64,000 nucleotides of DNA from Bugula neritina (Eukaryota > Animalia > Bryozoa): positions 14,498,642 through 14,562,641 of the forward strand of contig OZ037770.1 in NCBI GenBank assembly GCA_964035545.1, written 5' to 3'. Under the pieces are notes generated by a model. That model did no database searches and had not been told where the DNA came from. It was given only the letters and a program-made list of their open reading frames with translations. Position numbers and translations under genes: made by a program. This document shows positions 11,888-57,156 of this stretch, piece after piece (the stretch's first letter is position 1; every line of letters starts with the position of its first letter).

Positions 11888-14800
11888 TCAAGATCTGCGT
11901 GCAAGTGCCTCTGTCAGATTAGTCATGGCAGTTACTGAATCATCGCTAGAGTTGGCTCGAACATAAAACTTCTTAACCTCAGTTTTCATTTTTCTTATAC
12001 TGTCGGTAGTAACAGTTTGTGAAAGTATGACAAGAGTTCCTTGAGCAGCTATGAAGAACTTCAGGGCCCTGTAGATTGATAGTTGGTACTGAAACTCAAG
12101 CTCTAGAAAGGGTGCTAAAATCCAATGAATGCCAAACAGCACTTTCAGTTTTATAATAGCTATAATCTTTTTCCTCGTTTTATGTTTTCTAGTTTGTGTA
12201 AGGTTGCTGCCAGATTTAAATACTTTGACACTGGCAATAATAAGGAGAATGATGGCCAGGGCTGTCATTATATAGATTGGAGCTAAAACAAGAAGATATC
12301 TGGTCTGCTGACTTCCAATAAAGCACAAGCCGTCTATAAACACGGGGTACAGTTTCTCGAACTTTACTGCGTCAAGAATAAGAGCTAAGGCAACGTTTAA
12401 TAGTGGAGTTAGCCAGGCAAACGAGGCGTAGTATATGTAGGTTCTATTACTGCGATGTTGCACGGGCTGAGTGTTGACTATCCCTTTAAGTATCCAAACA
12501 CAGATTGCTGTAGTCCAAGTGTGTAAAGAAAGAAAAAAGTATATTTGGAAGCAAGATGCAACTCTGCATGTAAGTCCCTTAGAGTTAACAAGAATGTAGA
12601 ATATTTGTGCTGCAATTGCCGTCATTAACGAGCTGATGACAAAATAGCCAGTTGTCGATCTTTTTCCTTTGTAAAAGAAATGGAATGTATAGATTAACAC
12701 TACTACAAAGGAGAAAGCTCCTATCACAATGTCGGCGGTTTCCAAATAGGTATTATGACTATAAAGCTGGCAGGTGTAAAGTTTGCTGCTTATTATAACA
12801 AAGTCAGAACTTTCATCAACTGTGGAAGTAGTGAGCATGTGATTCTTACAAACTTGCCAATTCAGCGTAGGATCCACGCTGCCGTACTTAACACAGAGGT
12901 TTAGGTCGGTGGTGAATGGATACACAACTGGTCGAAAATGCTCACCAACTGTACTTCCTAGCTTTGGTAAACTTAACTTGTTTGCTCTTAGCACAGGTGA
13001 AATTTGTTGTTGAATTAAAGAAGTGCTTTTCCGTATCAATTCATTCAAAAGAACTTCATTCATTTTCAAAGTGTTGAATGCATTAGTAGTAGCCGTACTA
13101 CTACAAGATAAATCTTCGGTGTTGTGACAAATAGCGCAATAACTGTTTTTGAATTTCTGTGTTACATTTCCATGACTGCCACTACCTCCATACACAAAAG
13201 ATGTTGGCGATTCGGTGCATAGTTTTGCTATTCTCCAATTTCTAGTATCATCTGGACACGCAGAAATATATCTCAGACTATCTGGCTTGCACCTTCTTAC
13301 TAGAGTTGTGTTCTCAGGGGGGAGATAATTCACTACATTGCAGCTGAAAAGATGAACAGAAATGTTAGCTTGGTGGAGGTAGGCCGGCGTCTAATTTGCA
13401 TTAGTTCACAGCACTTGTTTGATTTCAACACATGATGAGACATGAAGGCAACTAGAAAAACATTTCTATCAATTATGCGGGAAATATTATAACACAGCCT
13501 AATCTATAAAATCATATGCCGCAATATGTCTGCAGTCTCATTCTGATGTCAATATCATATTTCAACTCAAAACAATTCTAATATCACATTTATAAAGCAG
13601 CGTTGGCATGCAGCAAAAGTTGAAGGCAAATAGCATCTCATCAAATTGCATTTGAAAGAATTTAACAATTCAACAAAGCATGACAATTGCAATATTTGAC
13701 TGAGCTTCCCATCTATTTACTTTAATTATATAAAAATATGTTTGTGTATGTTTACATAAAAAACTATTTAAGTTGATCTAAAACGAATAATAATAATTTT
13801 ATATATTAGGGTTTAGGTTTGGATATGAATAATAGGCACTATTAACAGAGAAAGACATTTCACGGTTTGTTACTAGTTTCAGTTGAAACCTCAGAACAAA
13901 TCTAATTGTATTGATGCGTTACCCGTTCCACACAAAGTGCTTCTGGTATATTCACAAATAAATTATCTCACCTATTTAGTGTGTCTATTTGAGCTGTGGT
14001 ATCTACATCTTGGTGGAGTTTGCAAGTCGAATCATTTGAAGAACCAAAATATTTTTTCCAATACCTAACATCGTGCACTGAATGGCATTGGGAGCAATAG
14101 ATATTAGCATATCTAAAACACATCAGAACATAATAATATATATGTATTAGCACAGGGTTAGGCAGTGGCCATGTAAAAATATTTAGCAGTTCGAACTATT
14201 TGGCATTATATTTTAACCAGCGTGGGTATGTGGTGATGAACATCGCAATTACTTTTGCAGTGGCCTACTTTGAATACCATTATAAGCTTAATATTGCTTC
14301 TGGCCAAACATCAAAAACATTTTTCTAGGAGAGCTAAAATGTTCTACTACAGCGATAATTTTGTTAATATCGTTTTCATGGAACTATAAAATTCATGATT
14401 AATTTGTTTTAAATTAACCACCTTAAGCCAGTTGCTCCATCTGTTACAGGCACACCATGAATGTTGTCACTGCTGTTACTATGTTCACAGAGTTGTCTGA
14501 CTGTAGTATTATTGTATCCTCTTGGACATCTATGTACTTCCATCCATCCTTTTTCACCTGATTCCGAACTATTTTCGTTTGCTGGTTCATTGGTGACTTT
14601 ACAGGTGTAAGTCCCGTCTTCCAGAACGTTTTGGCTAGTTGGTTGGTAGACTGAGTCTTCACAGCAATCATTGAGGTAGATGCAGAATTCATCACAGTGA
14701 CAGCTCGGTTCAGGCTCCTCAATTAATTCCAACTCTGCGGGCCTACACTGACTACGATTGGTACAGAGTGAGTGAGACTGATGGCTGCTAGGCTCTATTG

Positions 14801-17212
14801 GCTGAAGGCCACTGGACTCTATTAGTGGTGCATGTTGACTAATACTTAGACATTTTAAGGAAGGGGGATCTAGTATGTAACCTTTTCCACAACCTGGCGC
14901 AGTGCAATCCGACGTTGAATCTACCCTACGTACGGCAAACAGCCCACAAACGTGTGGGAAGGTAGTGGAGCATGCAAATGACCCTAGATTCCACATATTA
15001 GGATCTGGACGGTTTTTATCTTTTGGGTGTTGAATGTCCGAAACTATTTCCATACAAACATTTTGAGTTTTGTTAACAAAATAAGAGCAGCTAATAGGGT
15101 TTTTACTGCTTTGTAGTTGCGTAAAAGAGAATGTAGGAGACTGTGAGTCGAACAACAGAGGTTGAGCAGCCATCAACAACAATTCAGTTGAAACGCCTAC
15201 CTTTCGTAACAGTTTCTCTCCATCCCAAACGAACTGGAGTAATTCTTTCGTATTGTTCAGAAGTTGAGGCTGAGAATAAGTTATATTAGAAAGATTCACA
15301 TTATGACAAAGGGCACAGAATTGGTTACGAAACACCAGGTTGAGAGAGGAAATGTTGATGTAGTTGGCAGGTCCAGTCTGACAGAGTGTAGCTAGCTCTT
15401 TGCTGGAGTTTGAAGGGCATGTGGACACGGATTGAAAACATCGATCTGGCTCTCGGGGAGGGACATAAGAAACATGGCAATTCCTACAAAACAACAGTTT
15501 AAAGTATACAAATATAAAACTTCATAAATAAATAAACAGTAAAATTTGAAAAAAAAATTCTAAATAAACTGCAAGCAAAAGAATATTATTTTGAATTTAG
15601 GCTTGGCAGCTAAAAATAAATACTGCTTGCAGTGTAAAAAGGGTTAGCATTACTTTTTATATGCGGAGTGTAATAAATGTGCACTAAAAACAAATTAAAT
15701 GATTTATGTAGGTGTATGCTTAGAACACAACTGTATTAACAGTCATCATATCATCGTCATATCATCATCATACCATCAACTGTTTGCTAGATGAACATCA
15801 TTAAATATAATCAGCTGCTTTGATTCCTCCTCACCCAACCCCATCTATCTCAGCTCTATTTGGGTAGAACTAGTTGCTTTAATTAATCTATCTAATTTAC
15901 TTGAAGATTGACATTCCGTGCAGCAACTCTAGCTTCTACTCAACAAATGTATTAATTAGTTTGCAATTTCATTCAAACCTTTCAATAAAATGCATTAGCA
16001 TTGAATGATTATGTTCTTTATGAGGGTAATAGCTGTTTATCTCCGTCATATGGCACTCCGCTTTGGCCGTCCACCATTCCACACTTTCCAACATCTCCTT
16101 CTCTCTTTCTTCTGCGCCGAACCACTTCTGGCGAGACAAATCTATCTGATTTTCAAGATCTACGCCATTACACATGGCGCAGTAGATGTTCTTATAACTG
16201 ATTTGATTGGCCACTCCTCTGACAGGCCAGCGACTAAGAGATAAGTCTACAAAGTCACCATGGTTGATAAACTCAATTAAATTAAACTAGACATTGCTTT
16301 TAAGTTATACATCAAAATCATCAATAAAGTTGAGACGTATTGTTTTAACAGATTTACTGTTCAGTCTATAGATAAGTTGCAAAAAATATACAAACAATTC
16401 AATGGGCAATCTAAAGCTAGTTTATTTGATAAATTACACACATCGATAACATACTGTTACTGTAATGTTTAAATAAAAACACAACACTTTTGGCAATGTT
16501 ATAATTATGTAAATGCCAAAAACTTGTTCTATCATAATTTCTATATATGGGAAAATGTTCCAATAATTCATAATCCTTGAAGAGTCATAGATCGAGTGTG
16601 CAAAATTTGGATTATAGATGTATATTTCTTTAATGAATATAATTTTACTACACTAAAAGTATATAAAAATGCACATGGCATACAAAACCTCTCTTACATA
16701 ATACTAAAAGCTCCAATAAGCCATATTCTCAGAAGGAAAGATTTATATAGTACCAACTTTGCATTGAAATTATAAATTCCTTTGCATAAATTTAGTTTTA
16801 CTACATTAAAATTATATTATAAAACCTCTCTTACATAATAATTTGGTCTACATTTCCATTTCTTCTTCATACCTGAAGAGTTAGCAGAGTTCTCACAAAG
16901 ATCTCTCAGCTCCTCATCCTCTAACTCAGAAGGACACGAGTCTACTATGTAGAACTCATCATGACAAGAGAAAGTGTTTGGAGAAAGCTGCTCTAGAGGT
17001 TGTGGAAAAGCTGTAGAACAACAATCTCCGTAGTATTTACACGGAGAAAGTCCAGATATGTTGTAGGTAAAGCAAGTGCCGCTGACGCTGAGCATATCTT
17101 GCATGAAGGCTGTGTTTAGAGAGAGTAGTCCTAAATGTACTTCTGTAACATTCTGCATGCATGTAGCTAGAGATACGGCACAAACTAATAAAGTACTTAG
17201 AGACTTTCTCAT
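11888..17212 (-). CDS. Family-B/Methuselah/adhesion-like GPCR with signal peptide, somatomedin-B-like and Cys-rich repeats, ~1088 aa
   Basis: Exons 17212-16873, 16246-15979, 15483-14422, 14112-13972, 13343-11888 total 3267 nt in one frame. Signal peptide MRKSLSTLLVCAVSLA; SMB-like CHCDEFCIYLNDCCED; four CP..C..N.[YF]C..C modules; 7TM region with CRVASCFQIYFFLSLHTW, AWLTP and LFGIHW (secretin/adhesion-like). Confidence 0.85.
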
Positions 17213-31130: not shown

Positions 31131-34100
31131 TCAGGAATAAAAGCCCATCATAGTGTGGCATCTCGAGTGCTCCTCAAATATCTACAGAATCAACAACAGC
31201 AAACAACTGCAGCAGGAAACAAAATACTAAAATATAAGATAGAAAATAACTTTTTACTTATTAACAAGGAATGTTGAGGCAATAAAAATACAAATTGTTT
31301 TGCTTTCCTTAAAACTAAAAACTAAAAAATAAAATAAAAAAATGTACCGCCTACCAATGATGTGCTGAGTTCAAGGTCAAACTCCAGTCCTGTGATCTCT
31401 GATAATTTCTGTTGAAAAAATTTGATAGTCTGAAACAGAATCGAGGAATTCTGAACTAATGTAAAAGGTGAGAGTTGTGTTCTCTATCTAGATACAGGAG
31501 TTTTCTTTGTCTTCTGATTCAGTTGCATGAAATTTTACACAAACATTTGGACAGACAGACACACAGACAGATAGACAGACAAACAGATAGACAGACACAC
31601 AGACAGAGACAGACAGACACACAGACATACAGACAGACAGACACACAGACAGACATACAGATAGACACACATACCAACCTGTATTGCAAACTGACAATCC
31701 AGAGTCTGGCCATAGTGTGATTTATAACCAATACAGGAGAGAATAGACAGAGGTATCTGCTCTACTTTGAACATCTGCAGGAGAATGTTGAGTAGAGGAT
31801 CGGAGACGGGAGTGTCTGCAGGAAGGCTGGGAAATCTTGTCACTTTAAGGTAAAATAAGGTCAAGGTCAAATTAACGGAATAAGCAAATAAGTTTATAAT
31901 ACACAGGATTATTGGATGTGGCTGAAAGTTGTTTCGAATTTCAGAAAGAAAATGATTAGTTGAATTCAGGTAGTAAGATAACTCTCGGGTATGGGTTGTC
32001 TAGCAACAGCCCTACATGTGATAATATATAAAAATCTGCAGGCTATTTAATTTCACATTGATTATTTCGAAGTAAAATGGACAAACTCCTTGCTAACTTC
32101 ACAGAAAGAAAAATGAAATCATAGATGAGATTGTGCTGGTCTGATAAGGTTTTAAATACTTATAGAATATGAGTAATAAAATAGCAGGCTCGTGACGACA
32201 ATGATAACACAGCACAATGATAAACGCAGTCCTGGAAATATTTCATGGCATATGAACTGGGAATTTTCAACTTAGATTTCCTACGATATCTATTTATACT
32301 ACCAGTGCAACTATCTCTGATTATATATAGTATAGAGCTTAGACTAGGAGGAAATAACATAAATATCAATATTATGAAATTGTTTAACGTCAAATCAATA
32401 CATATTAGTAATGGCAGAAATTCCCATATCTACTCTCCTCCCCCAGACGGATTTTCAGCCAAGATGAACTTATGTGCAGCAGGATTTTGGAAATTGGAAA
32501 AAATGGGGTTGGATTTCCAAGGAAGAGGTATAAAAGTGGGAGCTGACAGCAGTTGTTCATCACAAGAGAAGACACTACTGCACCAACTTATACTACAGCT
32601 ACTACTCCAATTCAACAGGTAAGTTGAAATATAAATAATAAACTATTAAAATAAAATTCTGTACTTTAAATAAAATAATAAAAATATTTAAAAGTTTTAA
32701 GGATGTTTAATATGTGCATATTATATTTATAATTATTAGGTATCATATTAATTAAATTCAGTAATTTAAAAGTGTCTTAATATTTTATTTATAACAAGTC
32801 TGCTGTTGGTAAAGAAATTCATGAGTATTACAAGTAATTGTGCCAGTCTTGATTTACAACTTTCTATTGATTTCAATTTTTAAATTATCATTTCTACTTC
32901 AAAGTGAGAAAAATTGACAAACAGAACAATTTTTGTTAGCTTTTATTGCCATTCTACCACATTGCATCATAATAACTATTATAAGCTGAAAAACTTCATG
33001 TAAAATAAGTTTTATAACTTTATGATAAATTGCACAGTTGAACATGTCAGACGACGGTATTGATTACGCTGACTACCCTGTCCAGTTAGCCACCACTACA
33101 GAGGCCCAAACCCCTCGGGTGTCCAAGAAAGTTGAATATCCACATAAAAGAAATGATTGCCGCTACGACCAAATCAGAGAGAGCGGGTAAGAAACATTTT
33201 AACCAAAACACATTCATTTTGTGTAAACTAAACAACCTAATTTTTAAAAAGTGTGCTACTGAGTTATGCCACAGAATAAAACAGTTTTAACGGAATTTTT
33301 GAAATAATATTTTATTATATTTTGTTGACCCCACAGACCTTGCCACAACCAACAAATCTTCCTGAAAAGGAAGTGCCCGTGTGGCCTGAAAACCGATGGT
33401 GCAAAGGAGAGGCATTACCATACTGGATGCAAGTATGACAGAATCAAAGACCAGAAAACAGGCAATCTGTTTCTCATTCTGAAATGCAAATGCAGTGCTA
33501 CTCAACTGGTTTAATCAACTACCAACATAAGAACACTCTCTCAGTACAGATTCACAACTGACACACCAATATGAATGACACTGCATAAACTACACCTTAC
33601 TAAATAAATAGATACTTCCTATTAATTGAATTTGTCTCATATTGTAACTTTTGACTTGTACATTTTAAAAAAATTATAAAAACCCATTGCTATGTCAACA
33701 CCATTAATAAAATGCTACATAATAAAATCCAAATCCTAAAGATGAATTAATCATAACTATATTAAAACATTAACCAATGCTAATTCTAGTTTTCTAATAA
33801 AAATTGCTCTTAAATTTTAGAAATTGTCTACTCTAGTATGTAAACTATAGTTTTCCTGACCCAAAGTAATGAAGCTGCAAATTATACAAGCAATTATTCA
33901 AATATTTAAGAATACAGCAGCTTAATAACAACAAACTACCCAAACGCAATAACACAATGGCTTCAATGTTTTACTTCGTGTGAGCTGGGAATTCCCAACT
34001 TATATTTCCTACCATAGCTGCGTATACTACTGGTACAACTGGTATATCTGATTGTTCAGTATATGAGCTTAGAGTAAGAGCAAATGAAAGAAATAATGAG

Positions 34101-37100
34101 TGAGAGACTGCCTAACATGAAAGCAATGCACATGAGTAATGGCAGAAAATTCCAAATCTATTCCTCTCCCCCGGTCGGATTTTTAGCCACCATGAAACTA
34201 TTTGCATCAGCAAGATTTTGGAAATTGGAAAAAATGGGGTTGAATTTCCAAGGAAGACGTATAAAAGCACAGCTGGCAGCAGTTGTTCATCACAACAGAC
34301 GAAGCTACTACTACAGCTACTACTACTCCAACCCAACATGTAAGTTAAAATAGAAATGATGAACTACTAAAATAAAATTCTACAGTTTGAATAAAATATT
34401 AAAAATAGCTAAAGGTTTTAATATATATATTATATAAAATAGATAAAGTTTTAAGGATGATTATTAAGTGCATCTATTTATACCAAATATCATTTTAATT
34501 AAATTAAATAATTCAAAACTGCCTTAATACTTTATTTCAATTGAGTTTGCTGTTAAAAAAGACATGATTATTACAAAAAATTGCTCCAGTCTCGATTTAC
34601 AAATTTAAATTATTTTAATTTTTAAATTAACATTTCTTTCTCAATGCAAAAACAAAAGTCGAATAAAACAATTTTTTTCAGCTTTTATTGTTATTATTTA
34701 TTTATTGTTGTATTATAGTAATTATAGTAACTGTTATGATCCGAAACACTTCATGTAAATTATGTTTTATGAATTTAAGATAAATTGCACTGTCACCATA
34801 CAACTGAAAATGTCAGATGACGGTATCAACTTTAATAAATACTCTACCCAGTTGGCCACCACTTCCGATTCCAAACCCCCCAAAAGAGAGTACAAGAAAA
34901 TTGAATACCCACATAGAAACAACGATTGCAGCTATGTTAAGATCACTGGGTAAGAAACTCTTTCATCTAGAAATTTTTTTTTATAAATAAATTTAAGGTA
35001 ATTATGGGAAAATATGTTACTTAGTCATGCTGGTGAATAAACCAAGTTTTCATATAGAAGGATACAGATTAACGTTTTAAACAATATTTTCACATACTTT
35101 GTTCATGACACAGCCCATTTAACACCAATCCGATCTGGCAAAGGCAGTGCCCGTGTGGCCTGAAGACCAATGGTGAAGAGGAGAAGCATTACAACCGTGA
35201 ATGCAAATACAAAAGAATCAAAGACCAGAAAACAGGCAATCTGTTTCTTATTCTGAAATGCAAATGCAGTGCTTATTAACTGGTTTAATCAACTACCAAC
35301 ACAAGAAAGCTCTCTCAGTACAGATTCACAGCTGACACATCAATAGAAAAACATTGCCTAAACTACACCATATACTAGATAACTAAATAATTCCAATTAA
35401 TTCAATTTATCTCATATTGTAAATTTTGACTTGTAAATTTAAAAAAACTATAAAACCAACAAATTGCTACATTAACTCATCAAGAAACTGTTACAAAAAA
35501 ATCCAAAGGTATCATAAATTTATTTAACATTAATTCTATGGTCTTCTAAAAAAATGCTCCTAGATTTCAGATATTTTGTACTCTTGTATGTAAACTAATG
35601 TTTCCCTAACCCAAACTAATAAACATTAAGCACCAAGAACACAAGTATTGTAATTTTATTTACTTAAAAATGCTCTACATCTATGAATATGTAACAGTTT
35701 TTTTCTAATCAGATGGTCACAATTACACAGATTTTAAGTCTTAGATACTTATTTTAAATTACTTTAATGCTAATTTTATTTTATTTTTTAAAATGGTTTA
35801 GTGTAATAAAACTTTTCTTTCAAACCTGTCAAATCTATGTGATCTGTTGCTGTAATACTATTGTAATGATGGAACAATTTACAAATTACAATTTGATATT
35901 AAATTATTATAACCCACTAAATTATTGAAATAACAAGTTGAACATGAAAACATCAGCGTATTACCAGGTTAAAGCTATATGTACATGATAGCAAATTATT
36001 TTTAGAAAAAGCAATAAGTATGGCATCATTATCTAGTCAATGTGAGTCGGGAGTTTATAACTCACAGTTTCTGAGGAATACAAAATAAAACGGGCTGTAA
36101 CCCAACCCCCCCCCTCAAACTATCAAATTATTAATTGTTGACCTCATATAAAGTTGTACATTATGCAAACAGATTTTCCAATATTTAAGAATACAGCAGC
36201 TTAGTAACAACAAACTACCCAAACACAATAATAACACGATGGCTTCAATGTTTTACTTCGTGTGAGCTGGGAATTCCCAACTTATATTTCCTACCATATC
36301 AGAGTATACTACTGGTATCACTAGTATATCTCACGGTTCAGTATATGAGCTTAGAGTAAAAGCAAATAAGAGAAATGCTATGGTGGGATGTTGCACAACA
36401 TAAAATCAATACATATTAATAATGGTAAATAATTTTCAATCAATTTCGCTCTCCAGTCAAATTTTCAGCAAACATGAAACAATTGGCAGCAGGATTTTGG
36501 AAATTGGAAAAATGGGGTTGAATTTCCAAGGAAGGAGTATAAAAATGGCAGCTGACAGCAGTTGTTCATCACAAGAGAAGAGACTACTACACCAGCTACT
36601 ACTACACCTACTGCTACTACAACCCAACAGGTAAGTCAGAATAGAAATGAAAAAGTTCAGAGTTTGAATAAATTATTAACAATAGCTAAAGTTTAAAGGA
36701 TGCTCATTATGTGTATAGATTTATATTAAATATCATATTAATTAAATTAGGTAATTTAAAAGTGTCTTAATATTTTATTTCAATTGAGTCGGCTGTTAAA
36801 AAATCATGACTATCTAAAATAATTTAAATTATTTTAACTTTTAGATTAAAATTTCTTTATCAAAGCAAAAACAAAAGTAGAATAAAACAACTTTTTTTAG
36901 CCTTGATTGTTATTATAGCATGTTGTATTGTAGTAACTATAGTAATTATACTAACCTAAACACTTCATGTAAAGTATATTTTATGACTTCAAGGTAAATT
37001 GTACTGTTACTATAGAGTTAAAAATGTCAGACGATGGTATTGACTATGAAGAATTATACCCTGCTCAGTTGGTCACCTCATCCAAACCCCCCAAAAGAGT

Positions 37101-40100
37101 GTACAAGAAAATAGAACACCCACATAGAAATAATGATTGCCGCTACGTTCGGACCACTGGGTAAGAAACCCTTTTCATCCAGAAAAATTCATTTTGTGAA
37201 ATTAAATTTAAGCCAATTACTAAAAAATGTGTTACTTATATTCATGATGGTGAATACATACAGAAAACTACACATGTAACTTTTGAATCAATATTTTAAT
37301 ATGCATTATATTATAATATATTATATTAATATATTTTGTTCGTCACACAGGTTACATGAAAGACACCCGATCTGGAAAAGGCAGTGCTCATGTGGGTGGA
37401 CTAATGGTGCATGGGAAAGACATTACCATCCTGAATGCAGATACGGAAGAATCAAAGACGACAAGACAGGCGCTCTGTTTCTCATTCTGAAATGCAAATG
37501 TGGTGTGGCTCAAAGTCAACTGGCTTAATCAACGACCAATGGAAAGAATCTCTCAGTACAGATTTACAATAAACGAGCGCAAAAACAAACATTGCTTAAA
37601 CTACACTTTAACAGATAACTAAAAAATTCCTATTTTTATCTCCTGTTGTAACTTTTGACTTGTACATTTTAAGAAACTATAAAACCACCAAATTGCTACT
37701 TTTAATTTACCAATACAATTTTACAAAATAAAATTCAAATTATTCATAAATTTATTTAACTTTAATTCTATACTTTTGAGAAATATTGTTGGTGAATTTG
37801 AATATTTTCTACTCTTGTAAACTAATGTTTCCCTAACCCAAACTAATGCACACTAAGCATAAAGAACACAAGTATTGTAATTTTATTTACTTAAAAATGC
37901 TCTATATCTATGAATAAGTAACAGTTTTTTTTGCTAATCAGATGGTCACAATTACACATTTTTCAAGTCTTAGATACTTATTTTAAATTGCTGCAATGTC
38001 AACTTAATTCACTTTTAAAATGGTTTAGTGTAATAAAATATTTCTTTCAAGCCTGTCAATCTATGTGATCTGTTGTTATAATACTATTGTAAGGATGGAA
38101 GAATTTACAAATTACAATTTGATATTAAATTATTATAACCCAGCAAATTATTGAAATAACAGTTTGAAAATGAAAACATCAGCGTATTACCAGGTTAAAG
38201 CTACACTACCTTTAGAAAAAGCAATACGGATGACATCATTATCTAGGAAATGTGAGTCGGGAATTCCCAACGTTCAAAGTTCACTTTAACTCTCACTATC
38301 ACTGTAACTAACAGTTCACTGTAACTTGACTACCAGTTTACTGTAACTGTCACTGTAACTACCAGTTCAATGTAACTCTAACTATCACTGTAACTACCAG
38401 TTTACTGTAACTCTCACTGTAACTACCAGTTTGCTGTGACTATCCCTTTTGGTAAGCTCAAAGAAATCCAAAATGCTACCCGAACTAATATTGAATGTTA
38501 TAAAATAGACTGCAGCAATAGAGTTACACATGAAAATGTTAACAATTACAACATTGAGCAGTTAACTTCATTATTCACAGCTAAAAAATAACAGTACTTA
38601 AACCCTTTGAATTGGGCACTGAGCTACGTTGCCACAAAACAATGCAGAGCAAGCAATATTTATATTAGAAAAAAGTTGCCTAATATTTTGATTAACTAAT
38701 AATAATTCTAGTGATTTTGATTACTATCAGCAGAGTAGGGAGATATACTTCTAAGGTCCACATGTCAAATCTAGTTTTCCTGAATAACAACACCTGAAGT
38801 CTAATATGCTACAGAATGCTGAAAAGCCTACAGCTTGACTGAAGTATTATATAGCATGATGTTAGATTTCTCCCTAGCTGAATTTTTCAACCACTAGAAT
38901 CTAAATCAAGGCTCAGGTAGCCCTACTGGGAACTGGGAAGGGGGGGGGAGGAGGTTAAAGGCTCAAGTCATTAGAGAATAACATAAGAATAAAACTAAAA
39001 TATCAACAGCCACCAAATTTTTCCATGGAAATCAGCAACATTTAAAGACAATCATTTCATCAGCGTTAAACTCTGACACATGTAGCATTGCCTGTATTCA
39101 TTTCTTAGGGTTCACCACAACCACACTCACTCCTTATAACAAGCATCTCAGTGAAGCTAGGCAGCGAATGACCTTTGGAATTCCGAGATTACAAATCTGT
39201 CCAGTGGAATAAAAAATCAATATACAGTATAGGGAACAGCCAATTGATTTCATCTCAACCAGAAACATAAACACACATTGTGAAACTGTTGCACAATACC
39301 GCCATCATGCTGAAGCAACAAACTATTTGTAAGAATCCAACTACTCACTAAAGCACTATATTCACTGACTGCCCTCTAGTAATCAGTTGCAGTACACTTA
39401 AGTCTAACGTTAACCATAAAACTTTTCTATAACGGATAACTGAACGGCAAACTACACTGCTAAACACCTCAAGTTCAGCCATTTAATTCTACAGGAAACT
39501 AGTATGTTGATTTATAAACAAACTACATGTGTTGTATATAGTATTGTGTTTACATCTTTATATGCCAAGTTGCCCAAGAGCTTCACGTGGGGGATAACCC
39601 TTCTCACCTCTTAGACTGAGGCTAAAGATAGTATATACATGTATATACAGTGTAGACTAGGTAAGTATATATACAGTGTAGACTAGGTAAGTGTATACAC
39701 AGTGTAGACTAGGTAAGTATATATACAGTGTAGACTAGGTAAGTATATATACAGTGTAGACTAGGTAAGTATATATACAGTATAGATTAGGTAAGTATAT
39801 ACACAGTATAGACTAGGTAAGTATATATATATACAGTATAGACTAGGTAAGTGTATACACAGTGTAGACTAGGTAAGTATATATATATACAATGTAGACT
39901 AGGTAAGTATATAGTAAGTACATGTTACACTTACACTTGGCCATATAGAAGTTATTCTCAAAGTAGACATTGTCTAGGAAGAGGTAGGGTCTGGTAAGTT
40001 CTGTCCTCAGACAGGAGAGGACAATTACTCTGAGAACTTGACTCTGTCTGCACATGTCTAACAGGTAGTTGACAACGTAGTGACATCTGTCAGCAGGTAC

Positions 40101-41656
40101 TTTTGTGTTGATGATGACTAAGGTGTACTGGAAACAGCATACAATGTATAATAATATTATACATTGATTATATTACAATATAATATAATACATTGATTAT
40201 ATTATATAATAACATAATATTATACATTGATTATAATATAATATAATACATTGATTATATAATATAATAACATAATATTATACATTGATTATATATCACA
40301 ACTTCAACCTAAATTATTAGTATAACATAGTATAATATTAATATCAGGCATTGCTTAATAATAAGCAAATGGGAAACATTATATTTGTTTACTATTTTAT
40401 CTATCAAAATGGACTAATATTCCATATTATTCACAGTTATACATTCGAACAAAATTCAGAGCACTATTTTAAAATGTATGCATGATAAAAAGTATCATCC
40501 GTTGATTAAACCAAGGAAATTAATATCATTTCAAATATTACACAACTAAATATTATACTGTTCTTATTTTTCAATTAGATTGCTAGCCTGCAAGGATAAT
40601 AGTTCACGTGTAGCAGTTGAAACAAGCTCTTACCATGCTTAAAAACCTTCCAATTAGAGGTGGAAATCTCAAAAACAAACTTTTTGAAACAAAAGTCTAA
40701 GTATTTTTGAAGCGGCTTATCACACACTAGAAGTTACTATCATACATGTTACCCCACAGCCACCTGCTACAACCTGTCACAACCTGCCACAACCTGTCAC
40801 ATGTGTCATACATGTGACACACAAACCTCCTCATATTTACAGTCCAGAATCTGAAAAGGCTCAAAGTATCTTTCTGAAGCAGTGGGAGTTGTGGGTCTCT
40901 GACATTTGACTGCAGGTTGAGAGGACAACTCTGGTAACACTATAGAATGGTAGTTGAACCCCATTTTCAGTCCCAACAGAGCTCGACTATAAAACATACG
41001 TGCAGTATACTGGTTAGGAGTACAGCAACAGGAAAAGGAAGTCATAAATACCGGAGAAAGTTCCTATTAGTTTGACCTACACAGTGTCCTGACAGAAGCA
41101 GCACCTTTTATACTGAAATTCATCTGAAATCAGAGTGTAAAATCCCATTTCAATACTAACACTTGCTAAATCACTCATCAGTGTCCTTTGAACAGATAAG
41201 GTATTAGTAAAAACCTTGTTTAAAATTGAAAATTCAATAACATTACAGTTAATACTACATTTGATAAAGAAAAAAGCGAATGATAAAATGCAGAAGTTAA
41301 TAGCTAGTCACTTTCTTTGACTGTATTCTGTTAGGAAAGTGATTACAAGGCACGAACTTTGACGAATTGCTTCACTAACTCAAGAAAACTCAGTGAAATT
41401 GTCTACTCGTCCAGATTGACTATAATTGTGAAAGTATGAAGACTTTAAGAGTTTGTTTAGCAACATTTGTTGAGGTTCAACTTAGCAGAGTAGGTAGGTT
41501 GGGGCGGGGTACTCACCACCCGACAGCCAGGATGTCAGCGTACCCAACAATCACATTCTTCTTAAACTGGTGGTATCTGTGATATTCTCTGTCGCTATAG
41601 ACAGGACGAGACTTCTGGGAAGGTACTAAATCTGCGCTGTCTTGAGCTGCCGCCAT
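31131..41656 (-). CDS. Divergent proteasome assembly chaperone-like protein (PAC1/PAC2 fold inferred), ~260 aa, C-terminal HbYX motif
   Basis: Exons 41656-41517, 40986-40827, 40127-39935, 31842-31679, 31429-31355, 31181-31131 splice in frame across an 8.1-kb phase-1 intron. Motifs: VIVGY..., SIVLPE, LVIINTKVP...YLLDMC...VIVLS, PSLPADTPVSDPLLNILLQ...IPLSIL; C-terminus GFYS. Probable non-coding upstream exons have donors near 42347 and 42649. The gene model is solid; the family assignment rests on recalled motif similarity. Confidence 0.7.
31550..31672. repeat. (GACA)n-type microsatellite
   Basis: Directly visible in an intron of the PAC-like gene. Confidence 0.95.
32259..32535 (+). promoter_or_regulatory. 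Promoter of nested gene copy 1: clustered NF-kB-like sites plus TATA box
   Basis: GGGAATTTTC 32259-32268, AGAAATTCCC 32416-32425, CGGATTTTCA 32448-32457, TTGGATTTCC 32509-32518, TATAAAA 32529-32535. The non-coding exon 1 ends at CAG|GTAAGT (32618). Confidence 0.7.
33044..33514 (+). CDS. Small leaderless Cys/His-rich protein, paralog 1 (106 aa), nested antisense
   Basis: Exons 33044-33186 and 33337-33514: MSDDGIDYADYPVQLATTTEAQTPRVSKKVEYPHKRNDCRYDQIRESGPCHNQQIFLKRKCPCGLKTDGAKERHYHTGCKYDRIKDQKTGNLFLILKCKCSATQLV. Frame, phase-2 intron and Cys/His positions are conserved in two paralogs. Confidence 0.85.
33987..34266 (+). promoter_or_regulatory. Promoter of nested gene copy 2: palindromic kB site plus TATA box
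   Basis: GGGAATTCCC 33987-33996, GAAAATTCC 34145-34153, TGAATTTCC 34241-34249, TATAAAA 34260-34266; exon-1 donor GTAAGT at 34340. Confidence 0.7.
34810..35279 (+). CDS. Small leaderless Cys/His-rich protein, paralog 2 (101 aa)
   Basis: Exons 34810-34949 and 35114-35279: MSDDGINFNKYSTQLATTSDSKPPKREYKKIEYPHRNNDCSYVKITGPFNTNPIWQRQCPCGLKTNGEEEKHYNRECKYKRIKDQKTGNLFLILKCKCSAY. Confidence 0.82.
36269..36544 (+). promoter_or_regulatory. Promoter of nested gene copy 3: palindromic kB site plus TATA box
   Basis: GGGAATTCCC 36269-36278, TGAATTTCC near 36519, TATAAAA 36538-36544; exon-1 donor CAG|GTAAGT at 36630/36631. Confidence 0.7.
37024..37528 (+). CDS. Small leaderless Cys/His-rich protein, paralog 3 (104 aa)
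   Basis: Exons 37024-37160 and 37351-37528: MSDDGIDYEELYPAQLVTSSKPPKRVYKKIEHPHRNNDCRYVRTTGLHERHPIWKRQCSCGWTNGAWERHYHPECRYGRIKDDKTGALFLILKCKCGVAQSQLA. Confidence 0.85.
38259..38268. promoter_or_regulatory. Palindromic kB-type site downstream of copy 3
   Basis: GGGAATTCCC in the context TGTGAGTCGGGAATTCCCAAC, similar to the copy 2/3 promoter context TGTGAGCTGGGAATTCCCAAC. Confidence 0.5.
38281..38445. repeat. CACTGTAACT-based degenerate tandem repeat
   Basis: Begins where similarity between the duplicated units ends. Confidence 0.8.
39641..39912. repeat. 26-bp minisatellite, ~10 copies
   Basis: Unit GTAAGTATATATACAGTGTAGACTAG. Confidence 0.92.
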
Positions 41657-41657
41657 C

Positions 41658-42016
41658 TTCTATAGAAAGAGTATAGAATCGTGTTATATGCTAACAATGT
41701 TGTACTTGTTATTCTATAGAAAGAGTATAGAATCGTGTTATATGTGAACAGTGTTGTACTTGTTATTCTATAGAAAGAGTATAGAATTGTGTTATATGTG
41801 AACAGTGTTGTACTTGTTATTCTATAGAATGAGTATAGAATTGTGCTGCATGTGAACAGTGTTGTACTTGTTATTCTATAGAAGGGGTATAGAATCGTGT
41901 TATATGCTAACAATGTTGTACTTGTTATTCTATAGAATGAGTATAGAATCGTGTTATATGCTAACAATGTTGTACTTGTTATTCTATAAAATGAGTATAG
42001 AATTGTGCTGTATGTG
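41658..42016. repeat. 54-bp minisatellite, ~6.5 copies, carrying copies of the splice acceptor
   Basis: Unit TATAGAAAGAGTATAGAATCGTGTTATATGCTAACAATGTTGTACTTGTTATTC; on the - strand most units contain TTCTATAG|AA. Confidence 0.92.
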
Positions 42017-54500: not shown

Positions 54501-57156
54501 GTTGAAAGTTTAACATTTTAATTCGTCTCCTGTTTTTATTGCTAATGGGATTTTTAAAAAGTTTACCAAATAAAGTTTGAGAGTTTGTAGTATTGTTTTT
54601 AGCGTCAACAATGAATTCGCTCATGAAACTGCAGTCCTGTGAGAGTGTCTGAAATTATATGATGATGACATGTTGACATCTTAAAACACTAGTAAAGCAT
54701 CTGCTATACTGAGCTCCACTATTAAAATAATAATGAATAACTCTAGTTCAGTGGTAAAAGGTACATTTGTCCTTGACATGTGTGTAGAACATTAAGAGGT
54801 CCTGTAGAATGCTGCTTTCGTGTCGTAGCGAAGCTATTACAACTTTCTCCTAGAGTTTTCCAGAGGGGGAAGGAGGGTTGTGACTAAACTGGCGGGAATT
54901 TAGTGTAACAAATGAAATCTAAATTGTGGTTACAGTCTTATGTCGAAATATGTTCTACATGACTGCTAGGCATACAAGAAACAACTGGCACTCACACAAC
55001 TCAATGTTAGTGTTGTCTCCACTACGCGGAGTAGGACGATTCAGAGTGCCGTAGCCTTTGTTTTCGGTCTCTTACATGGGGAGGTCGATTACGCTTCTCT
55101 AGCTGTGGATCTCGCTTACACACAAGAGTTTTGTCGACATACAAAGGTATTCTTATTGATTATTCCTTTCTAATGCTGGTGTGGTTTTTAGGTATTTGAT
55201 TGAATGTTTTTAAATGCAATAGTATGTTTTCTTTTTGCATCAGCAACTTTTAAGATTTTATCCTAAACTATTCTCTTCTACAGTAACATGTTCTCCACTT
55301 TATATAGAGAGATACATTCTGTTTAATATCCTCTGTTCAATGGAATGTATCAATACTGCCACTTATTTATTCACTCACTCACTCACTCACTCACTCACTC
55401 ACTCATACTCTCACTCACTCACTCATACTCTCACTCACTCATACACTCACTCACTCACTCACTCATGATACTCTCACTCACTCATACTCTCACTCACTCA
55501 CTCACTCACTCACTCACTCACTCACTCACTCACTCACTCACTCATACTCTCACTCACCTAGTAATACTTTCACTCACTTATTCATCTATAATTAACTTAA
55601 ATTTCTAATCAGCAGTTAATGTGTTGTAAACTTTCTGTAGGCTAGTCAGTGTAATTGTAAAGCTGCTGAGATTCACAGACGGAGGGGAGAGAAACGTCTG
55701 CGCGAAATGCGAAAAACCGACAGATTTTTTATCGAGTTTGACTCGAGCATTCATAAGTCAATGGGAGGCAGATACAGTGTCAAGTCATACTATCCTTGGA
55801 AAGCCGCCTTAGACATGATGGTGTCCAGGACATGTAGAAAGAAGGCACTTCCATGTAATAAAAGATATTGCTTTCGTGGTGAGTACCCCGCTGGGGGTCT
55901 GATTAGATGACTACTTACTAAATCACTTATTCACTGTTAAGTCATACAAACTTATAGTTATTCATCACTTGCCACAGTTCACTCACTGTTGTTACTTACC
56001 CTAGTAATTTACTGTATCACTCACTGTAGTTACTTACTGTAGTTACTAACTGTAGTTACTTACTGTAGTTACTAACTGTAGTCACTTACTGTAGTTACTA
56101 ACTGTAGTTACCAACTGTAGTCACTTACTGTAGTTACTAACTCTAGGTACTCACTGTAGTTACTTACTCTAGGTACTCACTGTAGTGGTTGTAGTTAATA
56201 ACTGTAGCTACTTACTGTAGTCACTTACTGTAGTTACTAGCTGTAGCTACTAACTGTAGTTACTCACTCTTGTAGTTTATTCACGATCAGTGCTTTGCAG
56301 TAAATGTGCTCTCTCATCTAATATATCGTGGAAATACTCAAATGTCTGCATACTCTCGTTTAATGCCGGTGATATGCTGGTGTTTTAGTGAGTCAAGTTG
56401 ATCTCATTTGGCAGAGTATGAGTTACTATTTCCAGCACATGTCTGCTGACACAGACATACTAATTGCTGCCAAGTTGGAGATGTACAGATTCCTCAAGGT
56501 AATTCTCCCGCGTAGTGCCCTGCTATCTGTTCATATCCTATTTTTTATGGAAATAGCTAGAAGCAGCACCGAGCTGGGTGTAACTCTGAACACATTAGTT
56601 TGGGGCTGTCTGGTTTGAAGTTCGGACAGTGTTTTCTATACAAATACTAGACTCAGTCACCCGCAACTCGGTGCTGCTTCTAACGATTTCCCATTTTCTA
56701 CATCCTTTATTTAAAAAAGATTTTTTTGTCATTTTTGTTGGTCGACTTAGTTGTTCAATATTTCAGGAGATAGTGTTAAGGATGTCTGACCACTCTACCC
56801 GCCCATCACAACTAATACCAGATAAGTTCACAGTCTACTCAGGTCACGATAATACTATAATACCACTGCTAATAGCGCTAGAACTACCGGTAAAACAATG
56901 GCCTCCGTTTGCATCTAGGCTAATATTTGAATTATATGAACCGTCTGCGGGTGCCGTGAGAAAAGAGCACATCTTCAAACTAATATACAATGGTAGAGAT
57001 GTCACTAGACAGTTGAAGTTCTGCGTCAGTAGTGTGGGCTATTTGTACCACGGGTGTGCGCTGAAAGACCTCGTCAACTATGTTCATAATATCGTGCCTA
57101 GTCTGGGTGCCACCAGCTACGCGGAGGCGTGTGGCTCGCAGAGAAATGTTTTATAG
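51549..57156 (+). CDS. PXYLP1: 2-phosphoxylose phosphatase 1 (histidine acid phosphatase, type II membrane), ~474 aa
   Basis: Exons 51549-51756, 52101-52274, 52819-52946, 54970-55146, 55641-55878, 56389-56498, 56767-57156 total 1425 nt. N-terminal signal anchor, YC..P....G.EG, catalytic RHGNRLP, LTQLGVEQHL, RTIQSA, YSGHDNT, WPPFASRLIFELY, YNGRDVT..L.FC. Confidence 0.88.
53681..53827. repeat. Imperfect inverted repeat (~65-bp arms), possible MITE or foldback remnant
   Basis: TATATAAATTAATTAAATTAAA..TAGTTGGATAAAA pairs with TTTTATCCAACTA..TTTAATTTAATTAATTTATATA. Confidence 0.75.
55368..55580. repeat. (TCAC)n microsatellite
   Basis: Directly visible in a PXYLP1 intron. Confidence 0.95.
56018..56275. 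repeat. 13-bp tandem repeat (ACTGTAGTTACTT/A)
   Basis: Directly visible in a PXYLP1 intron. Confidence 0.9.

Follow-up and report, generated by a model that had tools for sequence, protein, structure and literature searches.

To our knowledge, almost nothing is known about immunity and inducible gene regulation in Bryozoa. The locus described here raises a question of that kind. It carries small genes in tandem, preceded by sites resembling those read by Rel/NF-kB factors: what might switch these genes on, and what might their products do? We consider the layout of the array, its promoters and the proteins that it encodes, before proposing a role for the family.

A tandem array of small spliced genes

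Three tandem units are found between 32.2 and 38.3 kb of the window (the whole stretch of 64,000 nucleotides that was analysed). Direct-repeat families space them by approximately 1.73–1.78 kb and 2.21–2.28 kb. The predicted spliced proteins of units 1, 2 and 3 comprise 106, 101 and 104 amino acids, every one beginning with MSDDGI. All three reading frames are intact and the splice signals are canonical: the donors read GTAAG, and the acceptors are pyrimidine-rich and have CAG. TATAAAA(G) boxes stand at 32529, 34260 and 36538. A GTAAG donor located 80–93 nt 3' of each box (32619, 34340 and 36631, respectively) bounds a non-coding exon 1 that is devoid of ATG; this exon and every splice junction of the three units are predictions.

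The promoter and exon coordinates that follow all refer to the + strand, while kB-type sites are given without strand and the starts of exon 1 are approximate. Unit 1 displays a kB-like site, GGGAATTTTC (32259–32268), one mismatch away from the consensus GGGRNWYYCC and 270 bp upstream of the TATA box, and a second one, AGAAATTCCC (32416–32425), which is not kept in units 2 and 3. Its core promoter, GGATTTCCAA-N8-TATAAAAG (32511–32536), is a family-wide composite element. Predicted exon 1 (32560–32618) precedes exon 2, whose coding part (33044–33186) comprises the ATG, a disordered N-terminal tail and the H-x4-C-x-Y motif of a first module, up to a phase 2 intron. Exon 3 (33337–33514 with its stop, coding to 33511) contributes the C-x-C motif of this module and the entire second module. 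In unit 2, the perfect palindrome GGGAATTCCC (33987–33996) lies 273 bp upstream of the TATA box, and the core promoter GAATTTCCAA-N8-TATAAAAG (34242–34267) departs from the composite by one mismatch. Exon 1 (34290–34339) and the coding parts of exon 2 (34810–34949) and exon 3 (35114–35279 with the stop, coding to 35276) complete the spliced model. Unit 3 has a degenerate distal site, GGGAGTTTAT (36049–36058), homologous to perfect palindromes at 38259 and, in a contig of a related species, at L022:1731. It also has a proximal GGGAATTCCC (36269–36278), 269 bp upstream of the TATA box, and a core promoter GAATTTCCAA-N8-TATAAAAA (36520–36545) with two mismatches to the composite. Its exons are placed at 36570–36630, 37024–37160 (coding part) and 37351–37528 (with the stop, coding to 37525); use of another possible acceptor, at 37363, would shorten the protein to 100 amino acids. 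A last GGGAATTCCC (38259–38268) occupies the distal-site position at the 3' edge of the array, with no gene after it. Satellite repeats start just beyond, around 38280. An adhesion-GPCR-like gene and one for a histidine phosphatase neighbour the array, with no immune gene close by.

Much of this had been anticipated. The initial annotation had proposed three units of about 2 kb, each with a kB-type site, a TATA box, an ATG-less exon 1 and two coding exons, which is what the spliced models and the repeat spacing display. The palindromes that it had placed at 33987, 36269 and 38259 all read GGGAATTCCC, and the sites that it had listed for copy 1 were recovered at 32259 and 32416. What must be given up is the idea of a system of three genes. 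The array is one subfamily within a family of at least 11 genes, distributed over three chromosomal sites of a 216-Mb genome (3 in the window, 6 on C2 and 2 on C5).

Promoters and the factors that might read them

Three GGGAATTCCC matches are found in the window when 0.01 is expected from shuffles, a statistic which is not a count of independent events because the three palindromes are copies made by tandem duplication. Genome-wide, the motif appears 312 times as compared to 14 for the reversed control, i.e. it is 22 times commoner. The other members of the family extend the picture. Promoter identity between subfamilies is 35–45%, versus 32% for shuffled sequence, and TGGRAWTYCCA palindromes are nevertheless kept, 60–270 bp upstream, in subfamilies with such otherwise unalignable promoters. 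The GGRAWTYCC motif, present once per 51 kb in the genome, is located less than 300 bp upstream of the TATA box in four of the six subfamily lineages (P about 2e-8), and all 10 sites of this type in a 50-kb stretch of C2 fall inside the 15-kb gene cluster. Closer to the genes, GGNTTTCCAA is positioned exactly 8 bp before the TATA box in 10 of the 11 genes (two with one mismatch). The strict composite GGNTTTCCAA-N8-TATAWAAG occurs seven times in 216 Mb, always at family genes and including unit 1, and its reversed control never. The strict palindrome is missing from copy 1, and C2_F, C5a and C5b have variant or distant sites only.

On these sequence grounds the kB-type motif of the family promoters is more than an accident of the window array, because otherwise unalignable subfamily promoters share both the palindromes and GGNTTTCCAA. 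The motifs are homologous by descent: they show constraint, not independent origin. Conservation with respect to B. neritina says little in this regard, because non-coding DNA is approximately 85–90% identical, making footprinting uninformative. A dispersed repeat or transposon as the source of the palindrome was rejected, the extended 19-mer being unique to the window array. Readings of the sites as targets of STAT, HSF, MTF-1 or Su(H) were also discarded, with half-sites in the wrong orientation or spacing, or motifs that are not conserved across subfamilies; neither MRE (TGCRCNC) nor HSE was found between −320 and −22 in 10 promoters.

Which factor, then, would read these promoters? GGGAATTCCC, GGAAATTCC and GGAAATCCC all belong to the textbook repertoire of Rel and Dif/Dorsal-type sites. 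Inducible genes are usually laid out in this way, compact and in tandem, with clustered kB sites and a strong TATA box. A search with PF00554 retrieved two loci above cut-off, a Rel/Dorsal-type gene on C9, matched best in the PDB by Gambif1 and next by p65, and a p105/p100-type gene with a Rel-homology domain (RHD) on C1, and solely these types of locus, counts which are lower bounds. A conserved promoter might nevertheless be read by a non-immune factor, NFAT-like, developmental (Dorsal) or lineage-specific, with genes expressed in a particular tissue or stage – larval, metamorphic or zooid-type, for example. TGGRAWTYCCA can indeed be seen as two inverted TGGAA half-sites with T flanks, as NFAT-like as it is close to the classical GGGRNWYYCC, and the gene neighbourhood does not evoke immunity. 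Against this stand the textbook character of the sites, their inducible-type layout and the outcome of the PF00554 search, within its lower bounds, so that we consider a non-immune factor possible, if on the unlikely side.

A more radical view would make the palindromes non-regulatory passengers of tandem duplication, with genes running from a generic TATA promoter. The three perfect sites do share the flanks TGAGYYGGGAATTCCCAAC, in blocks with an overall identity of about 91%, and both the site of copy 1 and the proximal site of the related species, GAGAATTCCT, are degenerate. Yet the motif class is kept, and enriched, where subfamily promoters can no longer be aligned. Site turnover leaves a perfect proximal or distal copy before each gene, which fits selection, and the genome-wide excess over the reversed control goes in the same direction. 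Passengers are thus improbable.

A two-module protein without a leader

The N-termini of the window proteins are acidic and hydrophilic (MSDDGIDY...). No hydrophobic signal-like stretch can be read in them and the predicted exon 1 has no ATG, in line with the leaderless proteins announced by the initial annotation. Paralogues C2_A, C2_B and C2_D end with a CaaX box (CILL, CIIS and CEIM), a feature kept between species, with CTIS, CILL and CAIM in the B. neritina counterparts. The three window proteins, terminated by TQLV, CSAY and SQLA, do not have it. A cytosolic location fits the proteins of the family, because a signal peptide is absent and paralogues carry CaaX boxes.

The proposed duplication of an HCCC module is substantiated by hhalign, which aligns the two halves (H...C-x-Y...C-x-C) as homologues with a probability of 87% (E 4.4e-6), ligand residues in register. 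Exon-2 and exon-3 peptides were aligned separately, as MAFFT superposed the two modules when given both together. In each module, H, C, Y and CxC do not vary across the family, and the window copies keep all eight ligand residues. AlphaFold2 models of two B. neritina homologues, from two subfamilies, predict a six-stranded all-beta core, three strands per module, with the candidate ligand residues at strand ends and in loops. The core reaches a pLDDT of about 85, the tails are disordered and the mean is only 68–70, with shallow alignments (15–18 rows). Because the ligand residues are invariant, and in view of these models, we infer that each module of one His and three Cys would bind one structural zinc ion.

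Searches for a related fold gave little. Foldseek against the PDB found no convincing match (best E 0.5). In the VIA wide search the top match of both models was PDB 5ezu_B, with Z 5.4 and 3.8, under the 7–8 typical of chance. The known folds weighed here were the A46 N-terminal domain, which 5ezu represents, and the alpha-crystallin/CS beta-sandwich. TM-scores did not exceed 0.44 in a shape search of the ESM Atlas, where feature searches returned no usable match. The Atlas model of P0014 is poor (pLDDT 0.39) and its structural neighbours are therefore meaningless. The sole PDB sequence-profile match, ribosomal protein uS17, was rejected as not significant (E 0.25). A Pfam scan of six exon peptides and five full-length homologues gave best E values of 0.02–2.9, all far under cut-offs.

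Might these proteins be metal buffers or chaperones of the metallothionein type, handling zinc or copper via CxC and induced by metals rather than by an immune signal? They share with metallothioneins a small size, a cytosolic location, tandem duplication and CxC motifs, and invariant His and Cys residues such as theirs are typical of metal sites. Nonetheless, cysteine makes up about 30% of metallothioneins and only about 6% of the Bugula family, with 6–7 residues in the 101–106 amino acids of the window proteins. Tyr, Phe and Trp are plentiful, an ordered beta fold is predicted, and MRE is present in none of the 10 promoters. A metal-buffering function is thus highly improbable.

A family of Bugula-type bryozoans under selection

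The protein had been thought to be unlike any known family. It has, indeed, no Pfam match, the relatives that carry a name are all "hypothetical proteins" from Bugula neritina, and the homology and Foldseek check suggested at the time, now run, matched no characterised family. A HMMER search of exon 3 against 1.8 billion representatives yielded six matches, and each traceable one (by source name or near-identity to family genes) is Bugula-type; match P0003 was set aside as a spurious repeat protein. Word-indexed searches, one with a profile, retrieved nothing beyond B. neritina proteins and metagenome fragments. The MSDDGI-type protein is not among annotated B. neritina proteins, and a description of the mini-protein family was not found in the literature. 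As judged from these sequence comparisons, the gene family is so far known only from Bugula-type bryozoans, and it is uncharacterised.

The phase-2 intron is common to all 11 paralogues, at the same position, and independently made AUGUSTUS models of the B. neritina paralogues give identical splicing (PMC7576161). The family tree comprises five subfamilies on long stems (1.5–2 changes per site), and a B. neritina-type counterpart exists for every one of them. Purifying selection acts on these genes: dN/dS ranges from 0.30 to 0.63 among the three window copies and the related-species copy, and is below 1 in all pairs. That the units would be decaying or non-coding duplicates, their frames open by chance, might be suspected from the missing annotation in B. 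neritina but is hardly credible, given these ratios, three intact frames, the retention of eight ligand residues and splice signals, and an intact counterpart in the related species.

A proposed role for the family

We are left with a reading that we favour, if tentatively: a signal-inducible, immune or stress-related, intracellular family of zinc-module proteins with Rel-controlled promoters, of which the window units would be functional paralogues (the MSDDGI subfamily). The Rel-homology factors, Rel/Dorsal-type and p105/p100-type, would probably bind the TATA-adjacent GGNTTTCCAA as well as one or more upstream TGGRAWTYCCA palindromes, with transcription most likely starting about 30 bp past the strong TATAAAAG box. 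Each gene would specify a cytosolic protein of about 100 amino acids: a disordered N-terminal tail of some 25 residues, then a compact six-stranded beta domain. This domain would be made of two homologous three-strand modules, each H-x3-5-C-x-Y ... C-x-C and holding one structural zinc ion. In other subfamilies, the C-terminus is prolonged by a flexible tail whose terminal CaaX box would allow membrane anchoring, whereas the window copies, without this box, would be soluble. The product is probably a protein- or membrane-binding module, not an enzyme, and the window genes might act as immune or stress effectors.

One may go further. The double H/C/CxC beta domain could be an unseen zinc-binding fold, and the family might form the principal intracellular branch, induced by Rel/NF-kB, of innate immunity in bryozoans; its isoforms, some soluble and others prenylated, would bind or sequester components of signalling pathways or of pathogens. 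We regard this extended version as unlikely.

Whatever its role, the family is a test case, with at least 11 genes, a compact and family-unique promoter signature of Rel-type sites and two candidate factors encoded in the genome. Should Rel induction prove true, bryozoan biology would gain its first markers of NF-kB signalling, together with promoters for reporters. The family would also illustrate that an invertebrate can invest in effectors which stay in the cytosol, in part anchored to membranes, rather than in secreted products. With no Pfam or PDB match, the predicted two-module His/Cys3 beta domain may represent a metal-binding fold not described before. Were the genes constitutive or developmental, they would simply join the many lineage-restricted orphan families of invertebrate genomes.

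Comparison with known systems

Among zinc modules of the HCCC or CxC kind, TAZ domains also have one His and three Cys per site, but they are helical. The CSL/DPH3 zinc finger (PF05207) shares a C-x-C-G motif, with a match at E 1.5 and 9 bits versus a 29-bit cut-off. Both differ from the Bugula family in spacing and in its beta topology. The N-terminal beta-sandwich of vaccinia virus A46 (5ezu) is matched over the entire 67-residue domain (rmsd 2.8 Å over 66 residues, Z 5.4, and 2.9 Å over 63, Z 3.8). Identity is only 2–5%, A46 has no His/Cys metal sites, and with Z under chance level this is a weak lead. The resemblance, weak but repeated, to a domain that sequesters TIR adaptors would fit the binding or sequestering role of the extended version above, considered unlikely.

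By analogy only, one may also think of NF-kB-induced genes with antiviral or feedback functions inside the cell, such as the targets of Drosophila STING-Relish signalling (Nazo, for example) and the A20/AN1-type zinc-finger regulators. These would share with the family signal-less cytosolic products, apparently Rel-regulated promoters and, plausibly, small zinc-dependent domains, but they have no sequence or fold relationship to it. The NF-kB-driven immune effectors of the Drosophila cecropin, attacin and Bomanin clusters are secreted with signal peptides, while the Bugula proteins lack such peptides and end, in some paralogues, with a CaaX box, which would have them act inside the cell. In their genetic organization these clusters are nonetheless alike: compact tandem paralogues for small proteins, a strong TATA box, Rel-type sites within a few hundred base pairs, and products that evolve fast and are restricted to a lineage.

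A tandem array of three genes

The region is AT-rich eukaryotic DNA, with a G+C content of about 31%. Direct-repeat analysis delineates three tandem units, in which matching blocks recur at intervals of about 1.73-1.78 and 2.21-2.28 kb. Each unit has a TATAAAA(G/A) box (at 32529, 34260 and 36538), and a GTAAG donor 80-93 nt past it, the position of which bounds a short predicted first exon devoid of ATG. The ATG that opens the MSDDGI codons is found at 33044, 34810 and 37024 in units 1, 2 and 3. Splicing is predicted in every unit from a GGTAAGAAAC donor to a pyrimidine-rich CAG acceptor, and joining the exons yields predicted proteins of 106, 101 and 104 amino acids, respectively.

Rel/NF-kB-type (kB) sites accompany these units. 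Unit 1 has kB-like sites at 32259 (GGGAATTTTC) and 32416 (AGAAATTCCC), while the palindrome GGGAATTCCC is matched exactly at 33987, 36269 and 38259: three occurrences in the window against 0.01 expected from shuffles, a statistic which overstates independence because the palindromes are copies by descent. The copy at 38259, at the array's 3' edge, has no gene downstream and represents a second site position, the distal one. At 36049 this site is degenerate; a related species (metagenome contig L022, at 1731) has it in perfect form. The initial annotation had described units with kB sites, a TATA box, an ATG-less first exon and two coding exons; repeats, positions and predicted splicing bear out this description.

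Four short satellite arrays, with periods of about 17, 26, 24-34 and 54 nt, lie directly 3' of the genes (38280-38450, 39616-39937, 40138-40329 and 41604-41981), the first beginning right past the terminal palindrome. The sole recognisable neighbours in the window, none obviously immune-related, are long minus-strand open reading frames matching 7tm_2/Frizzled-like (adhesion-GPCR-type) and Somatomedin-B-like domains (11888-15494), and a plus-strand histidine phosphatase branch-2 exon (56629-57156).

A family found in Bugula

We hold with high confidence that the genes, and the family to which they belong, are real. The reading frame is open in all three units, each window copy retains all eight putative ligand residues, and pairwise dN/dS values among the three copies and one from the related species range from 0.30 to 0.63. 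Searches used exon peptides, the window exons being joined solely for translation, dN/dS and the tree. In six frames they uncovered eight additional loci in the 216-Mb assembly, two on chromosome C5 and six clustered on the minus strand of chromosome C2 (26261870-26277700). In all 11 genes a phase-2 intron, identical in position throughout, splits the coding sequence into two exons. Five subfamilies emerge from the tree, separated by long stems (1.5-2 changes per site), and every one of them has a B. neritina-type counterpart. Within the genome the MSDDGI subfamily is confined to the window array; the L022 contig carries an intact counterpart.

The protein had been noted as belonging to no recognised family, and so it appears. 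No Pfam family came near threshold, and HMMER gave six matches in total among 1.8 billion cluster representatives, of which the named ones are B. neritina 'hypothetical proteins'; a profile search added four further B. neritina proteins. These homologues are AUGUSTUS gene models (PMC7576161), with the same splicing as that derived independently here for the paralogues. We found no description of the family in the literature searched, and its restriction to Bugula means that no other source in the libraries searched yielded it.

Two related modules and a probably intracellular protein

The alignments contain, besides the first methionine and one tyrosine in the N-terminal tail, two invariant blocks: K-K-[IV]-E-x-x-H-x4-C-x-Y followed by [LW]-x-R-x-C-x-C in module 1, and H-x3-5-C-x-Y-x4-D followed by C-x-C in module 2. 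Comparison of the modules with hhalign (probability 87%, E 4.4e-6) places H, C-x-Y and C-x-C in register; the two halves of the protein are homologous. In AlphaFold2 models of annotated full-length B. neritina homologues from two subfamilies, the N-terminal tail is predicted to be disordered and each module contributes three of the six beta strands; the histidine closes strand 1, the first cysteine opens strand 2 and C-x-C comes just past strand 3 (mean pLDDT 70 for P0005 and 68 for P0012, cores about 85). Eight invariant histidines and cysteines, in a protein without signal peptide, point with fair confidence to zinc binding.

Foldseek, proposed in the initial annotation for the spliced proteins and run here with the models, gave nothing convincing (E 0.5 or worse); an Atlas shape search reached TM-scores of 0.44 or lower, and ESM Atlas feature searches returned no match. 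The N-terminal beta-sandwich of vaccinia A46, top VIA match for both models, is unconvincing, as Z scores of 5.4 and 3.8 are below the tool's reported chance level. The sole profile match among PDB sequences, ribosomal protein uS17 (E 0.25), is probably due to chance. This weak similarity of the family alignment to eukaryotic uS17/S11 spans 62 profile positions, the EG-x-Y-x-D-x-x-C and RFEKRH stretches aligning with blocks conserved in the family.

Prenylation takes place in the cytosol. Three C2 paralogues end, after a disordered tail, in CaaX boxes (CILL, CIIS and CEIM), kept in their B. neritina counterparts as CTIS, CILL and CAIM, and these lend independent support to the family's being intracellular, with the window copies as its probable soluble members.

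A conserved promoter composite

The main new result is a promoter composite conserved across the family. With all 11 genes anchored on their TATA boxes, promoter identity between subfamilies is 35-45%, against 32% for shuffled sequence. Yet GGNTTTCCAA lies exactly 8 bp before TATAWAAG in 10 of the 11 genes, units 2 and 3 and the paralogue C2_A each deviating from the decamer by one base. The strict 26-nt composite has seven matches genome-wide, all at family genes, and its reversed control none; unit 2 differs from it by one base and unit 3 by two.

Just upstream of the TATA-adjacent element, all three units keep a block specific to the MSDDGI subfamily, GATTTTGGAAATTGGAAAAA(A)TGGGGTT (32486-32510, 34216-34241 and 36495-36519), which contains two more GGAAA half-sites. 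In L022 (positions 1-75) the element and TATA box, GGGTTGAATTTCCCCACGAAAAGGTATAAAAAT, stand three times head to tail before the MSDDGI gene, the core promoter module being amplified locally.

Upstream of family genes, TGGRAWTYCCA-type palindromes are seen repeatedly. Their core, GGRAWTYCC, occurs 4,210 times in the genome, once per 51 kb; four of six subfamily lineages have it at most 300 bp from the TATA box (P about 2e-8), and all 10 sites of a 50-kb stretch of C2 fall inside the 15-kb gene cluster. A like pattern at the B. neritina loci is weak evidence because the two species are so close, their non-coding DNA being about 85-90% identical. The window palindrome itself, GGGAATTCCC, is 22 times commoner genome-wide than its reversed control (312 versus 14); its 19-nt context is unique to the window array, so that the site there does not belong to a dispersed repeat. 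Elsewhere, two pairs on chromosome C1, each exactly 6,354 bp apart (3620608/3626962 and 6916452/6922806), suggest a repeated element, perhaps of LTR type, with the palindrome at both ends.

Control and possible role

Our best reading is that the genes encode small cytosolic proteins, probably zinc-stabilised, and form a family restricted to the lineage, the transcription of which would be governed by Rel-homology factors through the conserved compact promoter. The genome encodes two such proteins, one of Rel/Dorsal type on C9 and one of p105/p100 type on C1, and the promoters examined contain neither MRE nor HSE. We give fair confidence to Rel-type control, as predicted from the sites. The main rival explanation is that another factor is in control and that expression is developmental or tissue-specific. 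Confidence in a specific immune-effector role is low. By analogy with other invertebrate tandem genes that combine kB sites and TATA boxes, the genes of this family are probably induced by a signal.
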